Program-made: the position numbers and the translations under genes
DNA from: Auanema rhodensis
Taxonomy: Eukaryota; Animalia; Nematoda
Assembly (NCBI GenBank): GCA_964057225.1
Contig: OZ059896.1
Coordinates: 4,836,001-4,900,000 of the forward strand
Direction of reading: 5' to 3'
Length of the DNA: 64,000 nucleotides
The notes under the pieces: generated by a model
What the model was told of the DNA's origin: nothing
Database searches by the model: none
Seen by the model: the letters and a program-made list of their open reading frames with translations, nothing else
In this document: in pieces, positions 12,001-38,270 of the stretch
Position numbering within the stretch: the stretch's first letter is position 1
Layout of the letters: each line of letters begins with the position of its first letter

Positions 12001-13399
12001 AAATGTACACGTGATGTGCACTTGGTATGTAACTCGATTCACGTGAAAGATAAAGAGATGCGGTTTTTAAAAATAGATTCTCCATGTCCATATTACTCTA
12101 AAAACAAATTTTTATTGATATTGGTGTATGGTAACCATGAGTTTGAAGTTTACGTGAACTTTAATTTATGCTAATTAAATGTACACGTGATGTGCACTTG
12201 GTATGTAACTCGCTTCACGTGAAAGATAAAGAGATGCGGTTTTCAAAATTAGATTCCCCATGTCCATATTAGTCTAAAAACAAAATTTCATTGATATTGG
12301 TGCATGGTAACCATGACTTTGAAATTTACGTGAACTTTAATTTATGCTAATTAAATGTACACGTGATGTGCACTTGGTATGTAACTCGCTTCACGTGAAA
12401 AATAAAGAGATGCGGTTTTCAAAATTAGATTCCCCATGTCCATATTAGTCTAAAAACAAAATTTTATTGATATTGGTGCATGGTAACCATGACTTTGAAA
12501 TTTACGTGAACTTTAATTTATGCTAATTAAATGTACACGTGATGTGCACTTGGTATGTAACTCGCTTCACGTGAAAGATAAAGAGATGCGGTTTTCATAA
12601 TTAGATTCTCCATGTCCATATTAGTCTAAAAACAAATTTTTATTGATATTGGTTCATGGTAACCATGAGTTTGAAATTTACGTGAACTTTAATTTATGCT
12701 AATTAAATGTACACGTGATGTGCACTTGGTATGTAACTCGCTTCACGTGAAAGATAAAGAGATGCGGTTTTCAAAATTAGATTCCCCATGTCCATATTAG
12801 TCTAAAAACAAAATTTTATTGATATTGGTGCATGGTAACCATGACTTTGAAATTTACGTGAACTTTAATTTATGCTAATTAAATGTACACGTGATGTGCA
12901 CTTGGTATGTAACTCGCTTCACGTGAAAGATAAAGAGATGCGTTTTTCAAAATTAGATTCCCCATGTCCATATTAGTCTAAAAACAAATTTTTATTGATA
13001 TTGGTGCATGGTAACCATGAGTTTGAAATTTATGTGAACTTTAATTTATGCTAATTAAATGTACACGTGATGTGCACTTGGTATGTAACTCGCTTCACGT
13101 GAAAGATAAAGAGATGCGGTTTTCAAAATTAGATTCCCCATGTCCATATTAGTCTAAAAACAAAATTTGATTGATATTGATGCATGGTAACCATGACTTT
13201 GAGATTTAAGTGAACTTTAATTTATGCTAATTAAATGTACACGTGATGTGCACTTGGTATGTAACTCGCTTCACGTGAAAGATAAAGAGATGCGGTTTTC
13301 AAAATTAGATTCCCCATGTCCATATTAGTCTAAAAACAAATTTTTATTGATATTGGTGCATGGTAACCATGACTTTGAAATTTACGTGAACTTTAACTT
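1..13399 (+). repeat. Outer variant domain (subfamily A), left
   Basis: Variants CATGAGTTTG, GATTCTCC, TTACTCT, CAAAATTTT, GTGAAAAAT, ACACGGGA, and 173-bp monomers with a 3-bp deletion at ~1836 and ~6057. Confidence 0.85.
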
Positions 13400-15599
13400 A
13401 TGCTAATTAAATGTACACGTGATGTGCACTTGGTATGTAACTCGCCTCACGTGAAAGATAACGAGATGCGGTTTTCAAAATTAGATTCCCCATGTCCATA
13501 TGAGTCTAAAAACAAATTTTTATTGATATTGGTTCATGGTAACCATGATTTTGAAATTTACGTGAACTTTACTTTATGCTAATTAAATGTACACGTGATG
13601 TGCACTTGGTATGTAACTCGCTTCGCGTGAAAGATAAATAGATGCGGTTTTCAAAATTAGATTCCCCATGTCCATATTAGTCTAAAAACAAATTTTTATT
13701 GATATTGGTTCATGGTAACCATGACTTTGAAAATTACGTGAACTTTAATTTATGCTAATTAAATGTACACGTGATGTGCACTTGGTATGTAACTCGCTTC
13801 ACGTGGAAGATAAAGAGATGCGGTTTTCAAAATTAGATTCCCCATGTTCATATTAGTCTAAAAACAAATTTTTATTGATATTGGTGCATGGTAACCATGA
13901 CTTTGAAATTTACGTGAACTTTAATTTATGCTAATTGAATGTACACGTGATGTGCACTTGGTATGTGACTCGCTTCACGTGAAAGATAAAGAGATGCGGT
14001 TTGCAAAATTAGATTCCCCATGTCCATATTAGTCTAAAAACAAATTTTTATTGATATTGGTTCATGGTAACCATGACTTTGAAATTTACGTGAACTTTAA
14101 TTTATGCTAAATAAATGTACACGTGATGTGCACCTGGAATGTAACTCGCTTCACGTGAAAGATAAAGAGATGCGGTTTTCAAAATTAGATTCCCCATGTC
14201 CATATTAGTCTAAAAACAAATTTTTATTGATATTGGTTCATGCTAACCATGACTTTGAAATTTACGTGAACTTTAATTTATGCTAATTGAATGTACACGT
14301 GATGTGCACTTGGTATGTAACTCGCTTCACGTGAAAGATAAAGAGATGCGGTTTTCGAAATTAGATTCCCCATGTCCATATTAGTCTAAAAACAAATTTT
14401 TATTGATATTGGTGCATGGTAACCATGACTTTGAAATTTACGTGAACTTTAATTTATGCTAATTAAATGTACACGTGATGTGCACTTGGTATGTAACTCG
14501 CTTCACGTGAAAGATAAAGAGATGCGGTTTTCAAAATTAGATTCCCCATGTCCATATTAGTCTAAAAACAAATTTTTATTGATATTGGTTCATGGTAACC
14601 ATGACTTTGAAATTTACGTGAACTTTAATTTATGCTAATTAAATGTACACGTGATGTGCACTTGGTATGTAACTCGCTTCACGTGAAAGATAAAGAGATG
14701 CGGTTTTCATAATTAGATTCCCCATGTCCATATTAGTCTAAAAACAAAATTTTATTGATATTGGTGCATGGTAACCATGACTTTGAAATTTACGTGAACT
14801 TTAATTTATGCTAATTAAATGTACACGTGATGTGCACTTGGTATGTAACTCGCTTCACGTGAAAGATAAAGAGATGACGTTTTCAAAATTAGATTCCCCA
14901 TGTCCATATTAGTCTAAAAACAAATTTTTATTGATATTGGTGCATGGTAACCATGACTTTGAAATTTACGTGAACTTTAATTTATGCTAATTAAATGTAC
15001 ACGTGATGTGCACTTGGTATGTAACTCGCTTCACGTGAAAGATAAAGAGATGCGGTTTTCAAAATTAGATTCCCCATGTCCATATTAGTCTAAAAACAAA
15101 TTTTTATTGATATTGGTTCATGGTAATCATGACTTTGAAATTTACGTGAACTTTAATTTATTCTAATTAAATGTACACGTGATGTGCACTTGGTATGTAA
15201 CTCGCTTCACGTGAAAGATAAAGAGATGCGGTTTTCAAAATTAGATTCACCATGTCCATATTAGTCTAAAAACAAATTTTTATTGATATTGGTGCATGGT
15301 AACCATGACTTTGAAATTTACGTGAACTTTAATTTATGCTAATTAAATGTACACGTGATGTGCACTTGGTATGTAACTCGCTTCACGTGAAATATAAAGA
15401 GATGCGGTTTTCAAAATTAGATTCCCCATGTCCATATTAGTCTAAAAACAAATTTTTATTGATATTGGTTCATGGTAACCATGACTTTGAAATTTACGTG
15501 AACTTTAATTTATGCTAATTAAATGTACACGTGATGTGCACTTGGTATGTATTTCGCTTCACGTGAAAGATAAAGAGATGCGGTTTTCAAAATTAGATT

Positions 15600-18500
15600 C
15601 CCCATGTCCATATTAGTCTAAAAACAAATTTTTATTGATATTGGTTCATGGTAACCATGACTTTGAAATTTACGTGAACTTTAATTTATGCTAATTAAAT
15701 GTACACGTGATGTGCACTTGGTATGTAACTCGCCTCACGTGAAAGATAAAGAGATGCGGTTTGCAAAATTAGATTCCCCATGTCCATATTAGTCTAAAAA
15801 CAAATTTTTATTGATATTGGTTCATGGTAACCATGACTTTGAAATTTACGTGAACTTTAATTTATGCTAAATAAATGTACACGTGATGTGCACCTGGAAT
15901 GTAACTCGCTTCACATGAAAGATAAAGAGATGCGGTTTTCAAAATTAGATTCCCCATGTCCATATTAGTCTAAAAACAAATTTTTATTGATATTGGTGTA
16001 TGGTAATCATGACTTTGAAATTTACGTGAACTTTAATTTATGCTAATTGAATGTACACGTGATGTGCACTTGGTATGTAACTCGCTTCACGTGAAAGATA
16101 AAGAGATGCGGTTTTCGAAATTAGATTCCCCATGTCCATATTAGTCGAAAAACGAATTTTTATTGATATTGGTGCATGGTAACCATGACTTTGAAATTTA
16201 CGTGAACTTTAATTTATGCTAATTAAATGTACACGTGATGTGCACTTGGTATGTAACTCGCTTCACGTGAAAGATAAAGAGATGCGGTTTTCAAAATTAG
16301 ATTCCCCATGTCCATATTAGTCTAAAAACAAATTTTTATTGATATTGGTTCATGGTAACCATGACTTTGAAATTTACGTGAACTTTAATTTATGCTAATT
16401 AAATGTACACGTGATGTGCACTTGGTATGTAACTCGCTTCACGTGAAAGATAAAGAGATGACGTTTTCAAAATTAGATTCCCCATGTCCATATTAGTCTA
16501 AAAACAAATTTTTATTGATATTGGTGCATGGTAACCATGACTTTGAAATTTACGTGAACTTTAATTTATGCTAATTAAATGTACACGTGATGTGCACTTG
16601 GTATGTAACTCGCTTCACGTGAAAGATAAAGAGATGCGGTTTTCAAAATTAGATTCCCCATGTCCATATTAGTCTAAAAACAAATTTTTATTGATATTGG
16701 TTCATGGTAACCATGACTTTGAAATTTACGTGAACTTTAATTTATGCTAATTAAATGTACACGTGATGTGCACTTGGTATGTAACTCGCTTCACGTGAAA
16801 GATAAAGAGATGACGTTTTCAAAATTAGATTCCCCATGTCCATATTAGTCTAAAAACAAATTTTTATTGATATTGGTTCATGCTAACCATGACTTTGAAA
16901 TTTACGTGAACTTTAATTTATGCTAATTAAATGTACACGTGATGTGCACTTGGTATGTAACTCGCTTCACGTGAAAGATAAAGAGATGCGGTTTTCAAAA
17001 TTAGATTCCCCATGTCCATATTAGTCTAAAAACAAAATTTTATTGATATTGATGCATGGTAACCATGACTTTGAAATTTAAGTGAACTTTAATTTATGCT
17101 AATTAAATGTACACGTGATGTGCACTTGGTATGTAACTCGCTTCACGTGAAAGATAAAGAGATGCGGTATTCAAAATTAGATTCCCCATGTCCATATTAG
17201 TCTAAAAACAAATTTTTATTGATATTGGTGCATGGTAACCATGACTTTGAAAATTACGTGAACTTTAATTTATGCTAATTGAATGTACACGTGATGTGCA
17301 CTTGGTATGTAACTCGCTTCACGTGAAAGATAAAGAGATGCGGTTTTCGAAATTAGATTCCCCATGTCCATATTAGTCTAAAAACAAATTTTTATTGATA
17401 TTGGTTCATGGTAACCATGATTTTGAAATTTACGTGAACTTTACTTTATGCTAATTAAATGTACACGTGATGTGCACTTGGTATGTAACTCGCTTCGCGT
17501 GAAAGATAAATAGATGCGGTTTTCAAAATTAGATTCCCCATGTCCATATTAGTCTAAAAACAAATTTTTATTGATATTGGTTCATGGTAACCATGACTTT
17601 GAAATTTACGTGAACTTTAATTTATGCTAATTAAATGTACACGTGATGTGCACTTGGTATATAACTCGCCTCACGTGAAAGATAAAGAGATGCGGTTTGC
17701 AAAATTAGATTCCCCATGTCCATATTAGTCTAAAAACAAATTTTTATTGATATTGGTTCATGGTAACCATGACTTTGAAATTTACGTGAACTTTAATTTA
17801 TGCTAAATAAATGTACACGTGATGTGCACCTGGAATGTAACTCGCTTCACATGAAAGATAAAGAGATGCGGTTTTCAAAATTAGATTCCCCATGTCCATA
17901 TTAGTCTAAAAACAAATTTTTATTGATATTGGTGTATGGTAATCATGACTTTGAAATTTACGTGAACTTTAATTTATGCTAATTGAATGTACACGTGATG
18001 TGCACTTGGTATGTAACTCGCTTCACGTGAAAGATAAAGAGATGCGGTTTTCGAAATTAGATTCCCCATGTCCATATTAGTCGAAAAACGAATTTTTATT
18101 GATATTGGTGCATGGTAACCATGACTTTGAAATTTACGTGAACTTTAATTTATGCTAATTAAATGTACACGTGATGTGCACTTGGTATGTAACTCGCTTC
18201 ACGTGAAAGATAAAGAGATGCGGTTTTCAAAATTAGATTCCCCATGTCCATATTAGTCTAAAAACAAATTTTTATTGATATTGGTTCATGGTAACCATGA
18301 CTTTGAAATTTACGTGAACTTTAATTTATGCTAATTAAATGTACACGTGATGTGCACTTGGTATGTAACTCGCTTCACGTGAAAGATAAAGAGATGACGT
18401 TTTCAAAATTAGATTCCCCATGTCCATATTAGTCTAAAAACAAATTTTTATTGATATTGGTGCATGGTAACCATGACTTTGAAATTTACGTGAACTTTAA

Positions 18501-19480
18501 TTTATGCTAATTAAATGTACACGTGATGTGCACTTGGTATGTAACTCGCTTCACGTGAAAGATAAAGAGATGCGGTTTTCAAAATTAGATTCCCCATGTC
18601 CATATTAGTCTAAAAACAAATTTTTATTGATATTGGTTCATGGTAACCATGACTTTGAAATTTACGTGAACTTTAATTTATGCTAATTAAATGTACACGT
18701 GATGTGCACTTGGTATGTAACTCGCTTCACGTGAAAGATAAAGAGATGACGTTTTCAAAATTAGATTCCCCATGTCCATATTAGTCTAAAAACAAATTTT
18801 TATTGATATTGGTTCATGCTAACCATGACTTTGAAATTTACGTGAACTTTAATTTATGCTAATTAAATGTACACGTGATGTGCACTTGGTATGTAACTCG
18901 CTTCACGTGAAAGATAAAGAGATGCGGTTTTCAAAATTAGATTCCCCATGTCCATATTAGTCTAAAAACAAAATTTTATTGATATTGATGCATGGTAACC
19001 ATGACTTTGAAATTTAAGTGAACTTTAATTTATGCTAATTAAATGTACACGTGATGTGCACTTGGTATGTAACTCGCTTCACGTGAAAGATAAAGAGATG
19101 CGGTATTCAAAATTAGATTCCCCATGTCCATATTAGTCTAAAAACAAATTTTTATTGATATTGGTGCATGGTAACCATGACTTTGAAAATTACGTGAACT
19201 TTAATTTATGCTAATTGAATGTACACGTGATGTGCACTTGGTATGTAACTCGCTTCACGTGAAAGATAAAGAGATGCGGTTTTCGAACTTAGATTCCCCA
19301 TGTCCATATTAGTCTAAAAACAAATTTTTATTGATATTGGTTCATGGTAACCATGATTTTGAAATTTACGTGAACTTTACTTTATGCTAATTAAATGTAC
19401 ACGTGATGTGCACTTGGTATGTAACTCGCTTCGCGTGAAAGATAAATAGATGCGGTTTTCAAAATTAGATTCCCCATGTC
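15600..19480 (+). repeat. Left-arm-specific tandem duplication of 11 monomers (1936 bp)
   Basis: TCACATGAAA at ~15914 and ~17850, GTCGAAAAACG at ~16145 and ~18081, GCGGTATTC at ~17165 and ~19101; each pair is 1936 bp apart. Ends approximate. Confidence 0.85.
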
Positions 19481-22400
19481 CATATTAGTCTAAAAACAAA
19501 TTTTTATTGATATTGGTTCATGGTAACCATGACTTTGAAAATTACGTGAACTTTAATTTATGCTAATTAAATGTACACGTGATGTGCACTTGGTATGTAA
19601 CTCGCTTCACGTGGAAGATAAAGAGATGCGGTTTTCAAAATTAGATTCCCCATGTTCATATTAGTCTAAAAACAAATTTTTATTGATATTGGTGCATGGT
19701 AACCATGACTTTGAAATTTACGTGAACTTTAATTTATGCTAATTGAATGTACACGTGATGTGCACTTGGTATGTGACTCGCTTCACGTGAAAGATAAAGA
19801 GATGCGGTTTGCAAAATTAGATTCCCCATGTCCATATTAGTCTAAAAACAAATTTTTATTGATATTGGTTCATGGTAACCATGACTTTGAAATTTACGTG
19901 AACTTTAATTTATGCTAAATAAATGTACACGTGATGTGCACCTGGAATGTAACTCGCTTCACGTGAAAGATAAAGAGATGCGGTTTTCAAAATTAGATTC
20001 CCCATGTCCATATTAGTCTAAAAACAAATTTTTATTGATATTGGTTCATGCTAACCATGACTTTGAAATTTACGTGAACTATAATTTATGCTAATTGAAT
20101 GTACACGTGATGTGCACTTGGTATGTAACTCGCTTCACGTGAAAGATAAAGAGATGCGGTTTTCGAAATTAGATTCCCCATGTCCATATTAGTCTAAAAA
20201 CAAATTTTTATTGATATTGGTGCATGGTAACCATGACTTTGAAATTTACGTGAACTTTAATTTATGCTAATTAAATGTACACGTGATGTGCACTTGGTAT
20301 GTAACTCGCTTCACGTGAAAGATGAAGAGATGCGGTTTTCAAAATTAGATTCCTCATGTCCATATTAGTCTAAAAACAAATTTTTATTGATATTGGTTCA
20401 TGGTAACCATGACTTTGAAATTTACGTGAACTTTAATTTATGCTAATTAAATGTACACGTGATGTGCACTTGGTATGTAACTCGCTTCACGTGAAAGATA
20501 AAGAGATGTGGTTTTCAAAATTAGATTCCCCATGTCCATATTAGGCTAAAAACAAATTTTTATTGATATTGGTGCATGGTAACCATGACTTTGAAATTTA
20601 CGTGAACTTTAATTTATGCTAATTAAATGTACACGTGATGTGCACTTGGTATGTAACTCGCTTCACGTGAAAGATAAAGAGATGCGGTTTTCAAAATTAG
20701 ATTCCCCATGTCCATATTAGTCTAAAAACAAATTTTTATTGATATTGGTTCATGGTAATCATGACTTTGAAATTTACGTGAACTTTAATTTATTCTAATT
20801 AAATGTACACGTGATGTGCACTTGGTATGTAACTCGCTTCACGTGAAAGATAAAGAGATGCGGTTTTCAAAATTAGATTCACCATGTCCATATTAGTCTA
20901 AAAACAAATTTTTATTGATATTGGTGCATGGTAACCATGACTTTGAAATTTACGTTAACTTTAATTTATGCTAATTAAATGTACACGTGATGTGCACTTG
21001 GTATGTAACTCGCTTCACGTGAAATATAAAAAGATGCGGTTTTCAAAATTAGATTCCCCATGTCCATATTAGTTCAAAAACAAATTTTTATTGATATTGG
21101 TTCATGGTAACCATGACTTTGAAATTTACGTGAACTTTAATTTATGCTAATTAAATGTACACGTGATGTGCACTTGGTATGTAACTTGCTTCACGTGAAA
21201 GATAAAGAGATGCGGTTTTCAAAATTAGATTCCCCATGTCCATATTAGTCTAAAAACAAATTTTTATTGATATTGGTTCATGGTAACCATGACTTTGAAA
21301 TTTACGTGAACTTTAATTTATGCTAATTAAATGTACACGTGATGTGCACTTGGTATGTAACTCGCCTCACGTGAAAGATAAAGAGATGCGGTTTGCAAAA
21401 TTAGATTCCCCATGTCCATATTAGTCTAAAAACAAATTTTTATTGATAATGGTTCATGGTAACCATGACTTTGAAATTTACGTGAACTTTAATTTATGCT
21501 AAATAAATGTACACGTGATGTGCACCTGGAATGTAACTCGCTTCACGTGAAAGATAAAGAGATGCGGTTTTCAAAATTAGATTCCCCATGTCCATATTAG
21601 TCTAAAAACAAATTTTTATTGATATTGGTTCATGGTAACCATGACTTTGAAATTTACGTGAACTTTAATTTATGCTAATTAAATGTACACGTGATGTGCA
21701 CTTGGTATGTAACTCGCTTCACGTGAAAGATAAAGAGATGACGTTTTCAAAATTAGATTCCCCATGTCCATATTAGTCTAAAAACAAATTTTTATTGATA
21801 TTGGTGCATGGTAACCATGACTTTGAAATTTACGTTAACTTTAATTTATGCTAATTAAATGTACACGTGATGTGCACTTGGTATGTAACTCGCTTCACGT
21901 GAAAGATAAAGAGATGCGGTTTTCAAAATTAGATTCCCCATGTCCATATTAGTCTAAAAACAAATTTTTATTGATATTGGTTCATGGTAACCATGACTTT
22001 GAAATTTACGTGAACTTTAATTTATGCTAATTAAATGTACACGTGATGTGCACTTCTTATGTAACTCGCTTCACGTGAAAGAAAAAGAGATGACGTTTTC
22101 AAAATTAGATTCCCCATGTCCATATTAGTCTAAAAACAAATTTTTATTGATATTGGTGCATGGTAACCATGACTTTGAAATTTACGTGAACTTTAATTTA
22201 TGCTAATTAAATGTACACGTGATGTGCACTTGGTATGTAACTCGCTTCACGTGAAAGATAAAGAGATGCGGTTTTCAAAATTAGATTCCCCATGTCCATA
22301 TTAGTCTAAAAACAAATTTTTATTGATATTGGTTCATGGTAACCATGACTTTGAAATTTACGTGAACTTTAATTTATGCTAATTAAATGTACACGTGATG

Positions 22401-25368
22401 TGCACTTGGTATGTAACTCGCTTCACGTGAAAGATAAAGAGATGACGTTTTCAAAATTGGATTCCCCATGTCCATATTAGTCTAAAAACAAATTTTTATT
22501 GATATTGGTTCATGCTAACCATGACTTTGAAATTTACGTGAACTTTAATTTATGCTAATTAAATGTACACGTGATGTGCACTTGGTATGTAACTCGCTTC
22601 ACGTGAAAGATAAAGAGATGCGGTTTTCAAAATTAGATTCCCCATGTCCATATTAGTCTAAAAACAAATTTTTATTGATATTGGTGCATGGTAACCATGA
22701 CTTTGAAATTTACGTGAACTTTAACTTATGCTAATTAAATGTACACGTGATGTGCACTTGGTATGTAACTCGCCTCACGTGAAAGATAAAGAGATGCGGT
22801 TTTCAAAATTAGATTCCCCATGTCCATATGAGTCTAAAAACAAATTTTTATTGATATTGGTTCATGGTAACCATGATTTTGAAATTTACGTGAACTTTAC
22901 TTTATGCTAATTAAATGTACACGTGATGTGCACTTGGTATGTAACTCGCTTCGCGTGAAAGATAAATAGATGCGGTTTTCAAAATTAGATTCCCCATGTC
23001 CATATTAGTCTAAAAACAAATTTTTATTGATATTGGTTCATGGTAACCATGACTTTGAAAATTACGTGAACTTTAATTTATGCTAATTAAATGTACACGT
23101 GATGTGCACTTGGTATGTAACTCGCTTCACGTGGAAGATAAAGAGATGCGGTTTTCAAAATTAGATTCCCCATGTTCATATTAGTCTAAAAACAAATTTT
23201 TATTGATATTGGTGCATGGTAACCATGACTTTGAAATTTACGTGAACTTTAATTTATGCTAATTGAATGTACACGTGATGTGCACTTGGTATGTGACTCG
23301 CTTCACGTGAAAGATAAAGAGATGCGGTTTGCAAAATTAGATTCCCCATGTCCATATTAGTCTAAAAACAAATTTTTATTGATATTGGTTAATGGTAACC
23401 ATGACTTTGAAATTTACGTGAACTTTAATTTATGCTAAATAAATGTACACGTGATGTGCACCTGGAATGTAACTCGCTTCACGTGAAAGATAAAGAGATG
23501 CGGTTTTCAAAATTAGATTCCCCATGTCCATATTAGTCTAAAAACAAATTTTTATTGATATTGGTTCATGTTAACCATGACTTTGAAATTTACGTGAACT
23601 TTAATTTATGCTAATTGAATGTACACGTGATGTGCACTTGGTATGTAACTCGCTTCACGTGAAAGATAAAGAGATGCGGTTTTCGAAATTAGATTCCCCA
23701 TGTCCATATTAGTCTAAAAACAAATTTTTATTGATATTGGTGCATGGTAACCATGACTTTGAAATTTACGTGAACTTTAATTTATGCTAATTAAATGTAC
23801 ACGTGATGTGCACTTGGTATGTAACTCGCTTCACGTGAAAGATAAAGAGATGCGGTTTTCAAAATTAGATTCCCCATGTCCATATTAGTCTAAAAACAAA
23901 TTTTTATTGATATTGGTTCATGGTAACCATGACTTTGAAATTTACGTGAACTTTAATTTATGCTAATTAAATGTACACGTGATGTGCACTTGGTATGTAA
24001 CTCGCTTCACGTGAAAGATAAAGAGATGCGGTTTTCAAAATTAGATTCCCCATGTCCATATTAGTCTAAAAACAAATTGTTATTGATATTGGTGCATGGT
24101 AACCATGACTTTGAAATTTACGTGAACTTTAATTTATGCTAATTAAATGTACACGTGATGTGCACTTGGTATGTAACTCGCTTCACGTGAAAGATAAAGA
24201 GATGCGGTTTTCAAAATTAGATTCCCCATGTCCATATTAGTCTAAAAACAAATTTTTATTGATATTGGTTCATGGTAATCATGACTTTGAAATTTACTTG
24301 AACTTTAATTTATTCTAATTAAATGTACACGTGATGTGCACTTGGTATGTAACTCGCTTCACGTGAAAGATAAAGAGATGCGGTTTTCAAAATTAGATTC
24401 ACCATGTCCATATTAGTCTAAAAACAAATTTTTATTGATATTGGTGCATGGTAACCATGACTTTGAAATTTACGTGAACTTTAATTTATGCTAATTAAAT
24501 GTACACGTGATGTGCACTTGGTATGTAACTCGCTTCACGTGAAATATAAAGAGATGCGGTTTTCAAAATTAGATTCCCCATGTCCATATTAGTCTAAAAA
24601 CAAATTTTTATTGATATTGGTTCATGGTAACCATGACTTTGAAATTTACGTGAACTTTAATTTATGCTAATTAAATGTACACGTGATGTGCACTTGGTAT
24701 GTAACTCGCTTCACGTGAAAGATAAAGAGATGCGGTTTTCAAAATTAGATTCCCCATGTCCATATTAGTCTAAAAACAAATTTTTATTGATATTGGTTCA
24801 TGGTAACCATGACTTTGAAATTTACGTGAACTTTAATTTATGCTAATTAAATGTACACGTGATGTGCACTTGGTATGTAACTCGCCTCACGTGAAAGATA
24901 AAGAGATGCGGTTTGCAAAATTAGATTCCCCATGTCCATATTAGTCTAAAAACAAATTTTTATTGATATTGGTTCATGGTAACCATGACTTTGAAATTTA
25001 CGTGAACTTTAATTTATGCTAAATAAATGTACACGTGATGTGCACCTGGAATGTAACTCGCTTCACGTGAAAGATAAAGAGATGCGGTTTTCAAAATTAG
25101 ATTCCCCATGTCCATATTAGTCTAAAAACAAATTTTTATTGATATTGGTTCATGCTAACCATGACTTTGAAATTTACGTGAACTTTACTTTATGCTAATT
25201 AAATGTACACGTGATGTGCACTTGGTATGTAACTCGCTTCGCGTGAAAGATAAATAGATGCGGTTTTCAAAATTAGATTCCCCATGTCCATATTAGTCTA
25301 AAAACAAATTTTTATTGATATTGGTTCATGGTAACCATGACTTTGAAATTTACGTGAACTTTAATTTA

Positions 25369-25374
25369 CGTACG
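25369..25374. other. 6-bp insertion CGTACG next to the junction
   Basis: Consensus TTAATTTA-TGCTAA reads TTAATTTA-CGTACG-TGCTAA here. I saw it in no other monomer. Confidence 0.93.
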
Positions 25375-25410
25375 TGCTAATTAAATGTACACGTGTACAT
25401 TTAATTAGCA
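25375..25410. repeat. Perfect 36-bp palindrome at the inversion junction (TGCTAATTAAATGTACAC|GTGTACATTTAATTAGCA)
   Basis: Read directly from lines 25321-25440. It is centred on the monomer's first CACGTG (25390-25395) and has no spacer. Confidence 0.97.
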
Positions 25411-25411
25411 T

Positions 25412-25587
25412 AAATTAAAGTTCACGTAAATTTCAAAGTCATGGTTACCATGAACCAATATCAATAAAAATTTGTTTTTAGACTAATATGGACATGGGGA
25501 ATCTAATTTTGAAAACCGCATCTCTTTATCTTTCACGTGAAGCGAGTTACATACCAAGTGCACATCACGTGTACATTTAATTAGCAT
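25412..25587 (-). repeat. Unpaired central monomer (present in the right arm only)
   Basis: The last full left monomer (start 25192; variants CTTCGCGTG and ATAAATAG) mirrors the second right monomer (25763->25588), not the first. The mirror sum 50955 exceeds the axis sum 50785 by 170 = 176-6. Confidence 0.88.
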
Positions 25588-28500
25588 AAATTAAAGTTCA
25601 CGTAAATTTCAAAGTCATGGTTACCATGAACCAATATCAATAAAAATTTGTTTTTAGACTAATATGGACATGGGGAATCTAATTTTGAAAACCGCATCTA
25701 TTTATCTTTCACGCGAAGCGAGTTACATACCAAGTGCACATCACGTGTACATTTAATTAGCATAAAGTAAAGTTCACGTAAATTTCAAAGTCATGGTTAG
25801 CATGAACCAATATCAATAAAAATTTGTTTTTAGACTAATATGGACATGGGGAATCTAATTTTGAAAACCGCATCTCTTTATCTTTCACGTGAAGCGAGTT
25901 ACATTCCAGGTGCACATCACGTGTACATTTATTTAGCATAAATTAAAGTTCACGTAAATTTCAAAGTCATGGTTACCATGAACCAATATCAATAAAAATT
26001 TGTTTTTAGACTAATATGGACATGGGGAATCTAATTTTGCAAACCGCATCTCTTTATCTTTCACGTGAGGCGAGTTACATACCAAGTGCACATCACGTGT
26101 ACATTTAATTAGCATAAATTAAAGTTCACGTAAATTTCAAAGTCATGGTTACCATGAACCAATATCAATAAAAATTTGTTTTTAGACTAATATGGACATG
26201 GGGAATCTAATTTTGAAAACCGCATCTCTTTATCTTTCACGTGAAGCGAGTTACATACCAAGTGCACATCACGTGTACATTTAATTAGCATAAATTAAAG
26301 TTCACGTAAATTTCAAAGTCATGGTTACCATGAACCAATATCAATAAAAATTTGTTTTTAGACTAATATGGACATGGGGAATCTAATTTTGAAAACCGCA
26401 TCTCTTTATATTTCACGTGAAGCGAGTTACATACCAAGTGCACATCACGTGTACATTTAATTAGCATAAATTAAAGTTCACGTAAATTTCAAAGTCATGG
26501 TTACCATGCACCAATATCAATAAAAATTTGTTTTTAGACTAATATGGACATGGTGAATCTAATTTTGAAAACCGCATCTCTTTATCTTTCACGTGAAGCG
26601 AGTTACATACCAAGTGCACATCACGTGTACATTTAATTAGAATAAATTAAAGTTCAAGTAAATTTCAAAGTCATGATTACCATGAACCAATATCAATAAA
26701 AATTTGTTTTTAGACTAATATGGACATGGGGAATCTAATTTTGAAAACCGCATCTCTTTATCTTTCACGTGAAGCGAGTTACATACCAAGTGCACATCAC
26801 GTGTACATTTAATTAGCATAAATTAAAGTTCACGTAAATTTCAAAGTCATGGTTACCATGCACCAATATCAATAACAATTTGTTTTTAGACTAATATGGA
26901 CATGGGGAATCTAATTTTGAAAACCGCATCTCTTTATCTTTCACGTGAAGCGAGTTACATACCAAGTGCACATCACGTGTACATTTAATTAGCATAAATT
27001 AAAGTTCACGTAAATTTCAAAGTCATGGTTACCATGAACCAATATCAATAAAAATTTGTTTTTAGACTAATATGGACATGGGGAATCTAATTTTGAAAAC
27101 CGCATCTCTTTATCTTTCACGTGAAGCGAGTTACATACCAAGTGCACATCACGTGTACATTTAATTAGCATAAATTAAAGTTCACGTAAATTTCAAAGTC
27201 ATGGTTACCATGCACCAATATCAATAAAAATTTGTTTTTAGACTAATATGGACATGGGGAATCTAATTTCGAAAACCGCATCTCTTTATCTTTCACGTGA
27301 AGCGAGTTACATACCAAGTGCACATCACGTGTACATTCAATTAGCATAAATTAAAGTTCACGTAAATTTCAAAGTCATGGTTAGCATGAACCAATATCAA
27401 TAAAAATTTGTTTTTAGACTAATATGGACATGGGGAATCTAATTTTGAAAACCGCATCTCTTTATCTTTCACGTGAAGCGAGTTACATTCCAGGTGCACA
27501 TCACGTGTACATTTATTTAGCATAAATTAAAGTTCACGTAAATTTCAAAGTCATGGTTACCATTAACCAATATCAATAAAAATTTGTTTTTAGACTAATA
27601 TGGACATGGGGAATCTAATTTTGCAAACCGCATCTCTTTATCTTTCACGTGAAGCGAGTCACATACCAAGTGCACATCACGTGTACATTCAATTAGCATA
27701 AATTAAAGTTCACGTAAATTTCAAAGTCATGGTTACCATGCACCAATATCAATAAAAATTTGTTTTTAGACTAATATGAACATGGGGAATCTAATTTTGA
27801 AAACCGCATCTCTTTATCTTCCACGTGAAGCGAGTTACATACCAAGTGCACATCACGTGTACATTTAATTAGCATAAATTAAAGTTCACGTAATTTTCAA
27901 AGTCATGGTTACCATGAACCAATATCAATAAAAATTTGTTTTTAGACTAATATGGACATGGGGAATCTAATTTTGAAAACCGCATCTATTTATCTTTCAC
28001 GCGAAGCGAGTTACATACCAAGTGCACATCACGTGTACATTTAATTAGCATAAAGTAAAGTTCACGTAAATTTCAAAATCATGGTTACCATGAACCAATA
28101 TCAATAAAAATTTGTTTTTAGACTCATATGGACATGGGGAATCTAATTTTGAAAACCGCATCTCTTTATCTTTCACGTGAGGCGAGTTACATACCAAGTG
28201 CACATCACGTGTACATTTAATTAGCATAAGTTAAAGTTCACGTAAATTTCAAAGTCATGGTTACCATGCACCAATATCAATAAAAATTTGTTTTTAGACT
28301 AATATGGACATGGGGAATCTAATTTTGAAAACCGCATCTCTTTATCTTTCACGTGAAGCGAGTTACATACCAAGTGCACATCACGTGTACATTTAATTAG
28401 CATAAATTAAAGTTCACGTAAATTTCAAAGTCATGGTTAGCATGAACCAATATCAATAAAAATTTGTTTTTAGACTAATATGGACATGGGGAATCCAATT

Positions 28501-30699
28501 TTGAAAACGTCATCTCTTTATCTTTCACGTGAAGCGAGTTACATACCAAGTGCACATCACGTGTACATTTAATTAGCATAAATTAAAGTTCACGTAAATT
28601 TCAAAGTCATGGTTACCATGAACCAATATCAATAAAAATTTGTTTTTAGACTAATATGGACATGGGGAATCTAATTTTGAAAACCGCATCTCTTTATCTT
28701 TCACGTGAAGCGAGTTACATACCAAGTGCACATCACGTGTACATTTAATTAGCATAAATTAAAGTTCACGTAAATTTCAAAGTCATGGTTACCATGCACC
28801 AATATCAATAAAAATTTGTTTTTAGACTAATATGGACATGGGGAATCTAATTTTGAAAACGTCATCTCTTTTTCTTTCACGTGAAGCGAGTTACATAAGA
28901 AGTGCACATCACGTGTACATTTAATTAGCATAAATTAAAGTTCACGTAAATTTCAAAGTCATGGTTACCATGAACCAATATCAATAAAAATTTGTTTTTA
29001 GACTAATATGGACATGGGGAATCTAATTTTGAAAACCGCATCTCTTTATCTTTCACGTGAAGCGAGTTACATACCAAGTGCACATCACGTGTACATTTAA
29101 TTAGCATAAATTAAAGTTAACGTAAATTTCAAAGTCATGGTTACCATGCACCAATATCAATAAAAATTTGTTTTTAGACTAATATGGACATGGGGAATCT
29201 AATTTTGAAAACGTCATCTCTTTATCTTTCACGTGAAGCGAGTTACATACCAAGTGCACATCACGTGTACATTTAATTAGCATAAATTAAAGTTCACGTA
29301 AATTTCAAAGTCATGGTTACCATGAACCAATATCAATAAAAATTTGTTTTTAGACTAATATGGACATGGGGAATCTAATTTTGAAAACCGCATCTCTTTA
29401 TCTTTCACGTGAAGCGAGTTACATTCCAGGTGCACATCACGTGTACATTTATTTAGCATAAATTAAAGTTCACGTAAATTTCAAAGTCATGGTTACCATG
29501 AACCAATATCAATAAAAATTTGTTTTTAGACTAATATGGACATGGGGAATCTAATTTTGCAAACCGCATCTCTTTATCTTTCACGTGAGGCGAGTTACAT
29601 ACCAACTGCACATCACGTGTACATTTAATTAGCATAAATTAAAGTTCACGTAAATTTCAAAGTCATGGTTACCATGAACCAATATCAATAAAAATTTGTT
29701 TTTAGACTAATATGGACATGGGGAATCTAATTTTGAAAACCGCATCTCTTTATCTTTCACGTGAAGCAAGTTACATACCAAGTGCACATCACGTGTACAT
29801 TTAATTAGCATAAATTAAAGTTCACGTAAATTTCAAAGTCATGGTTACCATGAACCAATATCAATAAAAATTTGTTTTTAGACTAATATGGACATGGGGA
29901 ATCTAATTTTGAAAACCGCATCTTTTTATATTTCACGTGAAGCGAGTTACATACCAAGTGCACATCACGTGTACATTTAATTAGCATAAATTAAAGTTAA
30001 CGTAAATTTCAAAGTCATGGTTACCATGCACCAATATCAATAAAAATTTGTTTTTAGACTAATATGGACATGGTGAATCTAATTTTGAAAACCGCATCTC
30101 TTTATCTTTCACGTGAAGCGAGTTACATACCAAGTGCACATCACGTGTACATTTAATTAGAATAAATTAAAGTTCACGTAAATTTCAAAGTCATGATTAC
30201 CATGAACCAATATCAATAAAAATTTGTTTTTAGACTAATATGGACATGGGGAATCTAATTTTGAAAACCGCATCTCTTTATCTTTCACGTGAAGCGAGTT
30301 ACATACCAAGTGCACATCACGTGTACATTTAATTAGCATAAATTAAAGTTCACGTAAATTTCAAAGTCATGGTTACCATGCACCAATATCAATAAAAATT
30401 TGTTTTTAGCCTAATATGGACATGGGGAATCTAATTTTGAAAACCACATCTCTTTATCTTTCACGTGAAGCGAGTTACATACCAAGTGCACATCACGTGT
30501 ACATTTAATTAGCATAAATTAAAGTTCACGTAAATTTCAAAGTCATGGTTACCATGAACCAATATCAATAAAAATTTGTTTTTAGACTAATATGGACATG
30601 AGGAATCTAATTTTGAAAACCGCATCTCTTCATCTTTCACGTGAAGCGAGTTACATACCAAGTGCACATCACGTGTACATTTAATTAGCATAAATTAAA

Positions 30700-33600
30700 G
30701 TTCACGTAAATTTCAAAGTCATGGTTACCATGCACCAATATCAATAAAAATTTGTTTTTAGACTAATATGGACATGGGGAATCTAATTTCGAAAACCGCA
30801 TCTCTTTATCTTTCACGTGAAGCGAGTTACATACCAAGTGCACATCACGTGTACATTCAATTAGCATAAATTATAGTTCACGTAAATTTCAAAGTCATGG
30901 TTAGCATGAACCAATATCAATAAAAATTTGTTTTTAGACTAATATGGACATGGGGAATCTAATTTTGAAAACCGCATCTCTTTATCTTTCACGTGAAGCG
31001 AGTTACATTCCAGGTGCACATCACGTGTACATTTATTTAGCATAAATTAAAGTTCACGTAAATTTCAAAGTCATGGTTACCATGAACCAATATCAATAAA
31101 AATTTGTTTTTAGACTAATATGGACATGGGGAATCTAATTTTGCAAACCGCATCTCTTTATCTTTCACGTGAAGCGAGTCACATACCAAGTGCACATCAC
31201 GTGTACATTCAATTAGCATAAATTAAAGTTCACGTAAATTTCAAAGTCATGGTTACCATGCACCAATATCAATAAAAATTTGTTTTTAGACTAATATGAA
31301 CATGGGGAATCTAATTTTGAAAACCGCATCTCTTTATCTTCCACGTGAAGCGAGTTACATACCAAGTGCACATCACGTGTACATTTAATTAGCATAAATT
31401 AAAGTTCACGTAATTTTCAAAGTCATGGTTACCATGAACCAATATCAATAAAAATTTGTTTTTAGACTAATATGGACATGGGGAATCTAATTTTGAAAAC
31501 CGCATCTATTTATCTTTCACGCGAAGCGAGTTACATACCAAGTGCACATCACGTGTACATTTAATTAACATAAAGTAAAGTTCACGTAAATTTCAAAATC
31601 ATGGTTACCATGAACCAATATCAATAAAAATTTGTTTTTAGACTAATATGGACATGGGGAATCTAATTTCGAAAACCGCATCTCTTTATCTTTCACGTGA
31701 AGCGAGTTACATACCAAGTGCACATCACGTGTACATTCAATTAGCATAAATTAAAGTTCACGTAATTTTCAAAGTCATGGTTACCATGCACCAATATCAA
31801 TAAAAATTTGTTTTTAGACTAATATGGACATGGGGAATCTAATTTTGAATACCGCATCTCTTTATCTTTCACGTGAAGCGAGTTACATACCAAGTGCACA
31901 TCACGTGTACATTTAATTAGCATAAATTAAAGTTCACTTAAATTTCAAAGTCATGGTTACCATGCATCAATATCAATAAAATTTTGTTTTTAGACTAATA
32001 TGGACATGGGGAATCTAATTTTGAAAACCGCATCTCTTTATCTTTCACGTGAAGCGAGTTACATACCAAGTGCACATCACGTGTACATTTAATTAGCATA
32101 AATTAAAGTTCACGTAAATTTCAAAGTCATGGTTAGCATGAACCAATATCAATAAAAATTTGTTTTTAGACTAATATGGACATGGGGAATCTAATTTTGA
32201 AAACGTCATCTCTTTATCTTTCACGTGAAGCGAGTTACATACCAAGTGCACATCACGTGTACATTTAATTAGCATAAATTAAAGTTCACGTAAATTTCAA
32301 AGTCATGGTTACCATGAACCAATATCAATAAAAATTTGTTTTTAGACTAATATGGACATGGGGAATCTAATTTTGAAAACCGCATCTCTTTATCTTTCAC
32401 GTGAAGCGAGTTACATACCAAGTGCACATCACGTGTACATTTAATTAGCATAAATTAAAGTTCACGTAAATTTCAAAGTCATGGTTACCATGCACCAATA
32501 TCAATAAAAATTTGTTTTTAGACTAATATGGACATGGGGAATCTAATTTTGAAAACGTCATCTCTTTATCTTTCACGTGAAGCGAGTTACATACCAAGTG
32601 CACATCACGTGTACATTTAATTAGCATAAATTAAAGTTCACGTAAATTTCAAAGTCATGGTTACCATGAACCAATATCAATAAAAATTTGTTTTTAGACT
32701 AATATGGACATGGGGAATCTAATTTTGAAAACCGCATCTCTTTATCTTTCACGTGAAGCGAGTTACATACCAAGTGCACATCACGTGTACATTTAATTAG
32801 CATAAATTAAAGTTCACGTAAATTTCAAAGTCATGGTTACCATGCACCAATATCAATAAAAATTCGTTTTTCGACTAATATGGACATGGGGAATCTAATT
32901 TCGAAAACCGCATCTCTTTATCTTTCACGTGAAGCGAGTTACATACCAAGTGCACATCACGTGTACATTCAATTAGCATAAATTAAAGTTCACGTAAATT
33001 TCAAAGTCATGATTACCATACACCAATATCAATAAAAATTTGTTTTTAGACTAATATGGACATGGGGAATCTAATTTTGAAAACCGCATCTCTTTATCTT
33101 TCATGTGAAGCGAGTTACATTCCAGGTGCACATCACGTGTACATTTATTTAGCATAAATTAAAGTTCACGTAAATTTCAAAGTCATGGTTACCATGAACC
33201 AATATCAATAAAAATTTGTTTTTAGACTAATATGGACATGGGGAATCTAATTTTGCAAACCGCATCTCTTTATCTTTCACGTGAGGCGAGTTACATACCA
33301 AGTGCACATCACGTGTACATTTAATTAGCATAAATTAAAGTTCACGTAAATTTCAAAGTCATGGTTACCATGAACCAATATCAATAAAAATTTGTTTTTA
33401 GACTAATATGGACATGGGGAATCTAATTTTGAAAACCGCATCTCTTTATCTTTCACGTGAAGCGAAATACATACCAAGTGCACATCACGTGTACATTTAA
33501 TTAGCATAAATTAAAGTTCACGTAAATTTCAAAGTCATGGTTACCATGCACCAATATCAATAAAAATTTGTTTTTAGACTAATATGGACATGGGGAATCT

Positions 33601-36600
33601 AATTTCGAAAACCGCATCTCTTTATCTTTCACGTGAAGCGAGTTACATACCAAGTGCACATCACGTGTACATTCAATTAGCATAAATTATAGTTCACGTA
33701 AATTTCAAAGTCATGGTTAGCATGAACCAATATCAATAAAAATTTGTTTTTAGACTAATATGGACATGGGGAATCTAATTTTGAAAACCGCATCTCTTTA
33801 TCTTTCACGTGAAGCGAGTTACATTCCAGGTGCACATCACGTGTACATTTATTTAGCATAAATTAAAGTTCACGTAAATTTCAAAGTCATGGTTACCATG
33901 AACCAATATCAATAAAAATTTGTTTTTAGACTAATATGGACATGGGGAATCTAATTTTGCAAACCGCATCTCTTTATCTTTCACGTGAAGCGAGTCACAT
34001 ACCAAGTGCACATCACGTGTACATTCAATTAGCATAAATTAAAGTTCACGTAAATTTCAAAGTCATGGTTACCATGCACCAATATCAATAAAAATTTGTT
34101 TTTAGACTAATATGAACATGGGGAATCTAATTTTGAAAACCGCATCTCTTTATCTTCCACGTGAAGCGAGTTACATACCAAGTGCACATCACGTGTACAT
34201 TTAATTAGCATAAATTAAAGTTCACGTAATTTTCAAAGTCATGGTTACCATGAACCAATATCAATAAAAATTTGTTTTTAGACTAATATGGACATGGGGA
34301 ATCTAATTTTGAAAACCGCATCTATTTATCTTTCACGCGAAGCGAGTTACATACCAAGTGCACATCACGTGTACATTTAATTAGCATAAAGTAAAGTTCA
34401 CGTAAATTTCAAAATCATGGTTACCATGAACCAATATCAATAAAAATTTGTTTTTAGACTAATATGGACATGGGGAATCTAATTTCGAAAACCGCATCTC
34501 TTTATCTTTCACGTGAAGCGAGTTACATACCAAGTGCACATCACGTGTACATTCAATTAGCATAAATTAAAGTTCACGTAATTTTCAAAGTCATGGTTAC
34601 CATGCACCAATATCAATAAAAATTTGTTTTTAGACTAATATGGACATGGGGAATCTAATTTTGAATACCGCATCTCTTTATCTTTCACGTGAAGCGAGTT
34701 ACATACCAAGTGCACATCACGTGTACATTTAATTAGCATAAATTAAAGTTCACTTAAATTTCAAAGTCATGGTTACCATGCATCAATATCAATAAAATTT
34801 TGTTTTTAGACTAATATGGACATGGGGAATCTAATTTTGAAAACCGCATCTCTTTATCTTTCACGTGAAGCGAGTTACATACCAAGTGCACATCACGTGT
34901 ACATTTAATTAGCATAAATTAAAGTTCACGTAAATTTCAAAGTCATGGTTAGCATGAACCAATATCAATAAAAATTTGTTTTTAGACTAATATGGACATG
35001 GGGAATCTAATTTTGAAAACGTCATCTCTTTATCTTTCACGTGAAGCGAGTTACATACCAAGTGCACATCACGTGTACATTTAATTAGCATAAATTAAAG
35101 TTCACGTAAATTTCAAAGTCATGGTTACCATGAACCAATATCAATAAAAATTTGTTTTTAGACTAATATGGACATGGGGAATCTAATTTTGCAAACCGCA
35201 TCTCTTTATCTTTCACGTGAGGCGAGTTACATACCAAGTGCACATCACGTGTACATTTAATTAGCATAAATTAAAGTTCACGTAAATTTCAAAGTCATGG
35301 TTACCATGAACCAATATCAATAAAAATTTGTTTTTAGACTAATATGGACATGGGGAATCTAATTTTGAAAACCGCATCTCTTTATCTTTCACGTGAAGCG
35401 AAATACATACCAAGTGCACATCACGTGTACATTTAATTAGCATAAATTAAAGTTCACGTAAATTTCAAAGTCATGGTTACCATGCACCAATATCAATAAA
35501 AATTTGTTTTTAGACTAATATGGACATGGGGAATCTAATTTCGAAAACCGCATCTCTTTATCTTTCACGTGAAGCGAGTTACATACCAAGTGCACATCAC
35601 GTGTACATTCAATTAGCATAAATTATAGTTCACGTAAATTTCAAAGTCATGGTTAGCATGAACCAATATCAATAAAAATTTGTTTTTAGACTAATATGGA
35701 CATGGGGAATCTAATTTTGAAAACCGCATCTCTTTATCTTTCACGTGAAGCGAGTTACATTCCAGGTGCACATCACGTGTACATTTATTTAGCATAAATT
35801 AAAGTTCACGTAAATTTCAAAGTCATGGTTACCATGAACCAATATCAATAAAAATTTGTTTTTAGACTAATATGGACATGGGGAATCTAATTTTGCAAAC
35901 CGCATCTCTTTATCTTTCACGTGAAGCGAGTCACATACCAAGTGCACATCACGTGTACATTCAATTAGCATAAATTAAAGTTCACGTAAATTTCAAAGTC
36001 ATGGTTACCATGCACCAATATCAATAAAAATTTGTTTTTAGACTAATATGAACATGGGGAATCTAATTTTGAAAACCGCATCTCTTTATCTTCCACGTGA
36101 AGCGAGTTACATACCAAGTGCACATCACGTGTACATTTAATTAGCATAAATTAAAGTTCACGTAATTTTCAAAGTCATGGTTACCATGAACCAATATCAA
36201 TAAAAATTTGTTTTTAGACTAATATGGACATGGGGAATCTAATTTTGAAAACCGCATCTATTTATCTTTCACGCGAAGCGAGTTACATACCAAGTGCACA
36301 TCACGTGTACATTTAATTAGCATAAAGTAAAGTTCACGTAAATTTCAAAATCATGGTTACCATGAACCAATATCAATAAAAATTTGTTTTTAGACTAATA
36401 TGGACATGGGGAATCTAATTTCGAAAACCGCATCTCTTTATCTTTCACGTGAAGCGAGTTACATACCAAGTGCACATCACGTGTACATTCAATTAGCATA
36501 AATTAAAGTTCACGTAATTTTCAAAGTCATGGTTACCATGCACCAATATCAATAAAAATTTGTTTTTAGACTAATATGGACATGGGGAATCTAATTTTGA

Positions 36601-38270
36601 ATACCGCATCTCTTTATCTTTCACGTGAAGCGAGTTACATACCAAGTGCACATCACGTGTACATTTAATTAGCATAAATTAAAGTTCACTTAAATTTCAA
36701 AGTCATGGTTACCATGCATCAATATCAATAAAATTTTGTTTTTAGACTAATATGGACATGGGGAATCTAATTTTGAAAACCGCATCTCTTTATCTTTCAC
36801 GTGAAGCGAGTTACATACCAAGTGCACATCACGTGTACATTTAATTAGCATAAATTAAAGTTCACGTAAATTTCAAAGTCATGGTTAGCATGAACCAATA
36901 TCAATAAAAATTTGTTTTTAGACTAATATGGACATGGGGAATCTAATTTTGAAAACGTCATCTCTTTATCTTTCACGTGAAGCGAGTTACATACCAAGTG
37001 CACATCACGTGTACATTTAATTAGCATAAATTAAAGTTCACGTAAATTTCAAAGTCATGGTTACCATGAACCAATATCAATAAAAATTTGTTTTTAGACT
37101 AATATGGACATGGGGAATCTAATTTTGAAAACCGCATCTCTTTATCTTTCACGTGAAGCGAGTTACATACCAAGTGCACATCACGTGTACATTTAATTAG
37201 CATAAATTAAAGTTCACGTAAATTTCAAAGTCATGGTTACCATGCACCAATATCAATAAAAATTTGTTTTTAGACTAATATGGACATGGGGAATCTAATT
37301 TTGAAAACGTCATCTCTTTATCTTTCACGTGAAGCGAGTTACATACCAAGTGCACATCACGTGTACATTTAATTAGCATAAATTAAAGTTCACGTAAATT
37401 TCAAAGTCATGGTTACCATGAACCAATATCAATAAAAATTTGTTTTTAGACTAATATGGACATGGGGAATCTAATTTTGAAAACCGCATCTCTTTATCTT
37501 TCACGTGAAGCGAGTTACATACCAAGTGCACATCACGTGTACATTTAATTAGCATAAATTAAAGTTCACGTAAATTTCAAAGTCATGGTTACCATGCACC
37601 AATATCAATAAAAATTCGTTTTTCGACTAATATGGACATGGGGAATCTAATTTCGAAAACCGCATCTCTTTATCTTTCACGTGAAGCGAGTTACATACCA
37701 AGTGCACATCACGTGTACATTCAATTAGCATAAATTAAAGTTCACGTAAATTTCAAAGTCATGATTACCATACACCAATATCAATAAAAATTTGTTTTTA
37801 GACTAATATGGACATGGGGAATCTAATTTTGAAAACCGCATCTCTTTATCTTTCATGTGAAGCGAGTTACATTCCAGGTGCACATCACGTGTACATTTAT
37901 TTAGCATAAATTAAAGTTCACGTAAATTTCAAAGTCATGGTTACCATGAACCAATATCAATAAAAATTTGTTTTTAGACTAATATGGACATGGGGAATCT
38001 AATTTTGCAAACCGCATCTCTTTATCTTTCACGTGAGGCGAGTTACATACCAAGTGCACATCACGTGTACATTTAATTAGCATAAATTAAAGTTCACGTA
38101 AATTTCAAAGTCATGGTTACCATGAACCAATATCAATAAAAATTTGTTTTTAGACTAATATGGACATGGGGAATCTAATTTTGAAAACCGCATCTCTTTA
38201 TCTTTCACGTGAAGCGAAATACATACCAAGTGCACATCACGTGTACATTTAATTAGCATAAATTAAAGTT
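30700..38270 (-). repeat. Right-arm-specific 16-mer/11-mer/16-mer amplification
   Basis: TTATAGTTC at ~30873, 33689 and 35625 (single left copy ~20081). GCGAAATAC at ~33465, 35401 and 38217 (single left copy ~15551). Spacings are 2816 bp (16x176) and 1936 bp (11x176). Ends approximate. Confidence 0.82.

Follow-up and report, generated by a model that had tools for sequence, protein, structure and literature searches.

Fold-back inversion junctions in other systems carry 2-8 bp of inverted microhomology together with a spacer, and 4-6 bp are enough in yeast (Hermetz et al., 2014, PMC3907307). The junction analyzed here, a change of strand within a satellite array of the nematode A. rhodense, resembles them in having mirror arms, a single-copy spacer that is contiguous with one arm, and inverted microhomology (6 bp, against 2-8 bp in that study). 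It differs in the spacer, which is 176 bp long and consists of one tandem-repeat unit, whereas the spacers described by Hermetz et al. range from 766 bp to 70 kb. Because the spacer is a unit of the same repeat as the arms, the turn resembles a near-perfect palindrome. Two further differences are that the microhomology is a self-complementary word recurring once per unit, and that a terminal deletion is not visible, since the event lies inside a satellite.

Two other described systems produce related layouts. In terms of layout alone, the blocks R2, F3 and R4 of the array (see below) form the direct-inverted-direct arrangement of ODIRA products (Brewer et al., 2024, PMC10766186), with which the locus also shares turns at short inverted repeats. 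Microhomology-mediated secondary deletions that alter the spacer have a counterpart in one of the alternative histories considered below. Here, however, there are at least four alternating blocks rather than three, and the spacers measure 46-1,028 bp, compared with 40-80 bp in that system. Breakage-fusion-bridge cycles combined with homology-mediated end-capping (Marotta et al., 2013, PMC3834830) likewise yield serial head-to-head and tail-to-tail mirror blocks, and short inverted repeats mediate the capping of the broken end. In contrast to that system, the blocks described here have nearly equal spans and turn at almost identical array coordinates each time, and all copies are equally young, with star-like divergence.

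In A. rhodense strain APS4, for which a 180.9-Mb PacBio HiFi assembly has been described, the multi-megabase terminal tandem-repeat blocks are germline-restricted, with ~29-fold coverage in these repeats compared with 236-fold in retained DNA (bioRxiv 10.64898/2026.08.27.747507). Strand switches in satellites are usually uninterpretable, because all repeat units look alike. The present switch is resolved to the base level with read support, and rare variants in the surrounding array make it possible to determine the register and the spacer and to compare the ages of four copies. The junction is a well-resolved instance of the known class of fold-back or palindromic junctions with inverted microhomology, the mechanism of which is already known; the setting is unusual, in that the satellite is confined to the germline and the nematode undergoes programmed DNA elimination.

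Geometry of the strand switch and its read support

The window, by which we mean the whole stretch of 64,000 nt that was analyzed (C4:4836001-4900000 of the 180,911,798-base genome), consists entirely of one 176-bp satellite, with a single change of strand. The axis is located between positions 25392 and 25393, inside the self-complementary hexamer CACGTG, and forms the center of a perfect 36-bp palindrome, as an earlier note on this DNA had described. Coordinates of the features are summarized in Table 1.

When the left arm is aligned with the right arm shifted by one monomer, there are 0 mismatches in 369 nt beyond a 6-nt bulge, whereas alignment with the unshifted right arm gives mismatches at 25524, 25538, 25591 and 25624 (two per unit). 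An ungapped mirror comparison over 5 kb gives an identity of 0.996 at an offset of 170 (176 minus the 6-bp insertion described below) versus 0.968 at an offset of 346. Monomer by monomer, L0-L43 are the partners of R1-R44, and 43 monomers near the axis contain 8 differences. A single 176-bp unit in the right arm has no mirror partner in the left arm. The partnerless monomer reported in the earlier note is thus real, and the position given for it there, 25412-25587, is one valid placement among several: the unit differs from its neighbor only at 25524 and 25538, and its start can therefore be drawn anywhere from 25393 to 25524 (an ambiguity of 132 bp).

The arms meet in the 6 bp of CACGTG with 0 mismatches and 0 bases inserted at the join itself. 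Only seven even self-complementary words of at least 6 bp occur in the 176-bp consensus, and the chance that a random symmetric axis would land in such a word is ~4%. Both arms present the 3' end of the 'F' strand at the join. As read directly from the sequence, a self-complementary hexamer joins two strands of like polarity, with the register offset by one unit.

The left arm is interrupted 18 bp to the left of the axis by the hexamer CGTACG, which occurs once in 264 kb of array and is missing from the three sister blocks. Its sequence context, TTTACGTACGTGC, has a single occurrence in the window. We read CGTACG as a putative scar of junction-associated synthesis or repair.

Table 1. Junction features and strand changes of the array, in window coordinates.
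Feature	Position	Strand	Remarks
Left arm, block F1, 'F' orientation	1..25392, on to about -10,890 beyond the window	+	36-kb mirror of the right arm, with unit-multiple indels
CGTACG insertion	25369..25374	+	18 bp from the axis, left arm
Perfect palindrome, 36 bp	25375..25410	.	18 + 18 nt
CACGTG with the axis, 6-bp microhomology of the join	25390..25395	.	
Partnerless 176-bp unit, loop or spacer including the hexamer	25393..25568	+	placement ambiguous
Paired right arm, block R2, 'R' orientation	25569..64000, to the turn at 71899 outside the window	+	
R2-private insertions	33186-35121; 44802-46209		11 units; 8 units
Junction	-10894		spacer 46 nt, left side
Junction	25392		spacer 176 bp, right side
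Junction	71899		spacer 448 bp, right side
Junction	115920		spacer 1,028 bp, right side

The junction is real and is present in DNA beyond the assembly. A 67-nt junction-specific contig of the public sequencing run X1 (25341-25407) covers both the CGTACG insertion and the axis, with 0 differences and a depth of 32, in agreement with the published ~29-fold coverage of germline-only DNA. With 99.9% identity between the arms and ~29-fold HiFi coverage behind the assembly in this compartment, one could suspect a chimeric fold-back read or a mis-join between near-identical satellite copies. The depth in X1 corresponds to the full single-copy germline level rather than to one or two reads, which argues that the junction is neither, and every block carries private variants; an assembly or library artefact is largely refuted, and we give it hardly any credence. 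Run X4 belongs to a 2019 study and has short contigs; its depth over the insertion bin is 52, which as independent support is suggestive only. In run X11, which carries another organism label, that depth is 0. Generic words of the satellite are found in runs X5 and X8-X15, which carry five other organism labels. Related taxa may have this satellite too, or samples may have been mixed.

An array of four mirror blocks

With 200 kb of flanks examined, the array extends from about -12,500 to beyond 184,000 (window coordinates). The four strand changes in it, at -10894, 25392, 71899 and 115920, delimit alternating mirror blocks, F1 (36 kb), R2 (46 kb), F3 (44 kb) and R4 (>68 kb), which span -10,890 to beyond 184,000 (C4:4825110 to beyond 5020000) and represent the same original stretch of array. 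A unit-level dot plot and alignments show adjacent blocks to be mirror copies along their entire length, so that direct-orientation resemblance is seen between F1 and F3 and between R2 and R4. In array coordinates, the turns fall at ~720-728 on the left and ~940-991 on the right.

At 71899/71900 (C4:4907899), GGTTACC is joined to TCGCTT with ~1 bp of microhomology, and at 115920/115921 (C4:4951920), GCGGTTTT is joined to TAAAGCGAG; both lie outside the self-complementary words (dyads) of the monomer, and their arms are 0.998-0.999 identical over 2.5 kb. The R-to-F junction at -10894 (C4:4825107) joins two different AAATTT words, with 6 bp of self-complementary microhomology.

In the 180 units that could be aligned four ways (31.7 kb), all 37 substitutions are private to one block (16 in F1, 10 in F3, 7 in R4 and 4 in R2), and so are all of the ~13 unit-multiple indels. 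Neither class contains a shared variant that would group any of the blocks. Since every variant is block-private, the four copies appear to have been born in a burst, and the order of the blocks is not readable from the mutations. The mirror layout and the star-like divergence point to a burst of inverted 'accordion' amplification as the origin of the four blocks. They indicate that rapid inverted amplification, and not only unequal crossing-over, enlarged at least some of the germline-restricted satellite.

Each block holds an internal tandem duplication of 25 units (4.4 kb; window 49023-60104 and equivalents), which therefore predates the burst. Later, private duplications in the same region comprise 13 units in F1 and ~18-20 units in R4; an extra segment that seemed common to F1 and R4 resolves into these two events. 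The apparent excess of private substitutions in F1 (16 versus 4-10 in the other blocks) falls to ~9 without the sites beside F1 indel boundaries, and is no evidence for error-prone synthesis. Direct tandem duplication of an F-R unit was rejected: both ends of the segment would have to coincide within ~2.5 units, and the F-to-R junctions are not the same at the two places.

Origin of the junction at 25392

We tentatively favor fold-back priming, or a replicative U-turn, as the event that made the junction (rough probability 0.45). The 3' end of the right arm's minus strand, finishing in ...TGTACACGTG, would anneal via CACGTG to the copy of this hexamer that lies one unit, or 176 bp, further back, and extension from the annealed end would copy the right arm backwards. 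In the predicted product, the 36-bp palindrome marks the turn, the loop of ~170 nt remains as one unit without a partner on the parental right side, and early slippage would leave CGTACG after the first 18 nt of the new left arm. The turn at 25392 would be the last leftward turn of the burst, with the blocks made in the order R4 > F3 > R2 > F1. It would have occurred ~230 bp or less from the template block's own end at an older turn, and this proximity suggests a break or stall at the older palindrome center. The intramolecular topology, the identity of the copy arm and the enzymes are parts of the model that we infer. The earlier note had proposed this event, and the geometry that it predicts is reproduced exactly, but a deletion, a sister fusion and a fork U-turn fit that geometry too.

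The polarity of the junctions bears on the direction of copying. Successive formation of R4, F3, R2 and F1 at an end that faces left would be expected to place the spacer on the same, right, side each time, and it is right-sided at three consecutive junctions (176, 448 and 1,028 bp). Together with the location of CGTACG in the presumed copy arm, the spacer side mildly favors the assignment made in the earlier note, in which the right arm is parental and the left arm the copy. The polarity of spacer and scar favors a one-ended origin with one newly synthesized arm by only about 4:1, and a deletion also fits. On the other side, no variant among the 37 substitutions and the unit indels links F1 with R2, and the alternative routes have no copy arm. 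The spacer at -10894 is on the opposite side, so the array was not built by leftward turns alone.

Two further points weigh against fold-back priming. DNA folding indicates that, rather than a loop of 170 nt, a single-stranded 3' end prefers a local hairpin of 38 nt formed by its terminal CACGT and the ACGTG lying 33 nt upstream. Furthermore, the same sequence would result from fusion of unequally resected sister ends or from a deletion of 1,672 bp.

The deletion emerges from comparison with the F3-R4 junction at 115920. Positions 25393-27392 match 117183-119182 at 2000 of 2000 nucleotides, and 23369-25368 match the stretch ending at 115492 at 1998 of 2000. With flanks this similar, the 25392 junction equals the F3-R4 junction minus 1,672 bp (115511-117182), a segment that includes the old turn and the whole spacer and is bounded on both sides by CACGTG. 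The unit that is unpaired at 25392 has a mirror partner in block F3. These observations are consistent with rejoining of a broken center, in which the F1-R2 junction began as a mirror copy of F3-R4 with the 1,028-bp spacer. Tails of a broken palindrome share polarity and can therefore anneal only at self-complementary words; the resected tails would have met at CACGTG one unit off register, with loss of the 1,672 bp. The unpaired unit would then be the remnant of an asymmetric deletion rather than a loop, and neither arm would be a fresh copy.

Palindromic junctions are documented to undergo secondary rearrangement mediated by microhomology (Brewer et al., 2024, PMC10766186), and F3-R4 is a sister copy in which the center exists in its intact form. 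That this sister junction, with its 1,028-bp spacer, is still intact also counts against the rejoining history. Under center rejoining, moreover, the side of the spacer and the side of the insertion would be coin tosses, yet both match serial fold-back. The rejoining history is as simple as fold-back priming and would fit the sequence equally well; we regard it as a serious candidate, if a somewhat less likely one.

Fusion of sister chromatids, or a U-turn at a replication fork, could have used CACGTG in the same way. Pairing one unit off register would have involved two sister ends in the first case, and the nascent and opposite template strands in the second, and both arms would be parental. 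The end sequence would be identical, and the alternating blocks with their like-positioned turns recall the products of breakage-fusion-bridge cycles or of ODIRA-type events. Nothing specific speaks against these routes, but they do not predict the polarity of spacer and scar, and we consider them improbable.

Finally, the center may have been symmetric at first (zero offset), with one unit later gained or lost by slippage or unequal exchange. Unit-multiple indels between the arms do exist (6 events in 188 aligned units), but here the indel would have to be exactly one unit and to fall within the first ~0.75 unit, which has a probability of ~0.01-0.025. No alternative form of the center is listed in the run contigs that were checked, a check of low power. 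We hold such a later change to be very improbable.

Strand switches at the dyads of the monomer

The earlier note had further suggested that the internal dyads of the satellite are built-in inversion hotspots, at which strand switches should be enriched. A catalogue of strand switches, compiled with anchored sequence patterns across the 181-Mb genome, contains 22 F-to-R and 27 R-to-F places. It is a lower bound, since a mutated anchor kept the 71899 junction out of it. Fourteen F-to-R junctions were analyzed by script, and the R-to-F junctions and seven more F-to-R junctions were read from 80-nt stretches. Besides the switch at 25392, at least 50 are catalogued, and the ~31 readable ones lie off the named dyads, with the exception of one at AAATTT (-10894).

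The symmetric CACGTG junction word occurs at a single F-to-R place genome-wide, the 25392 junction, and the corresponding word of opposite polarity (R-to-F) occurs 0 times in the genome. A genome-wide search for symmetric TTCACGTGAA junctions found none in either polarity. For CATGGTWACCATG, there are one F-to-R and four R-to-F symmetric junctions, counted as places and not as independent events; among CACGTG, TTCACGTGAA and CATGGTWACCATG, it is the only word that recurs. The CATGGTAACCATG dyad is thereby in use at 5 places genome-wide, and GTGCAC has no anchored match of the length that a symmetric junction there requires. Self-complementary words are thus sometimes used, the longest repeatedly, and most switches lie elsewhere. 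CACGTG is not a recurrent inversion site, a concrete negative result for the hotspot idea, which for the dyads as a group is mostly unsupported.

Among the 14 scripted F-to-R junctions, the one at 25392 alone is symmetric with 6 bp of microhomology; the others have 0-4 bp, several with insertions. Microhomology of at least 3 bp appears over-represented relative to a hand-worked expectation of ~5% for random joins. Every unit contains an imperfect hairpin of 38 nt at monomer phases 13-50, ACGTGAACTTTAATT / AATTAAATGTACACGT (for example at 25569-25606, minus strand), the 3' stem of which ends in CACGTG. Breakpoints on the F strand show a weak, non-significant excess there, at phases 42-65 (hand tally; chi-square ~10, 7 df).

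We speculate that the germline-only, multi-megabase satellite blocks of A. rhodense grow by palindromic 'accordion' bursts, with turns that recur at the fragile centers of earlier ones and are seeded, where available, by the self-complementary words of the monomer; as a general rule we think this doubtful. Such a burst would take one stretch of ~46 kb through several rounds of copying in alternating directions over a small number of cell cycles. If the proposal were true, the dyads and the intrinsic hairpin of the monomer would shape the expansion of DNA that is eliminated.

The catalogue also contains identical junctions at fixed spacings: 3,034 bp at C99:86510/89544 and again at 87739/90773, 5,084 bp at C84:44445/49529, and 15,305 bp at C5:5160283/5175588. 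At these loci, the junction-containing units are themselves tandemly amplified. In addition, within the 80-nt stretches read, the same junction sequences are present at the two ends of one scaffold (C3:147647 and C3:23575303, with the strand displays swapped), and one junction sequence is shared by two chromosomes (C4:929004 and C6:20659530). These matches suggest exchange between terminal satellite blocks, or their shared ancestry.
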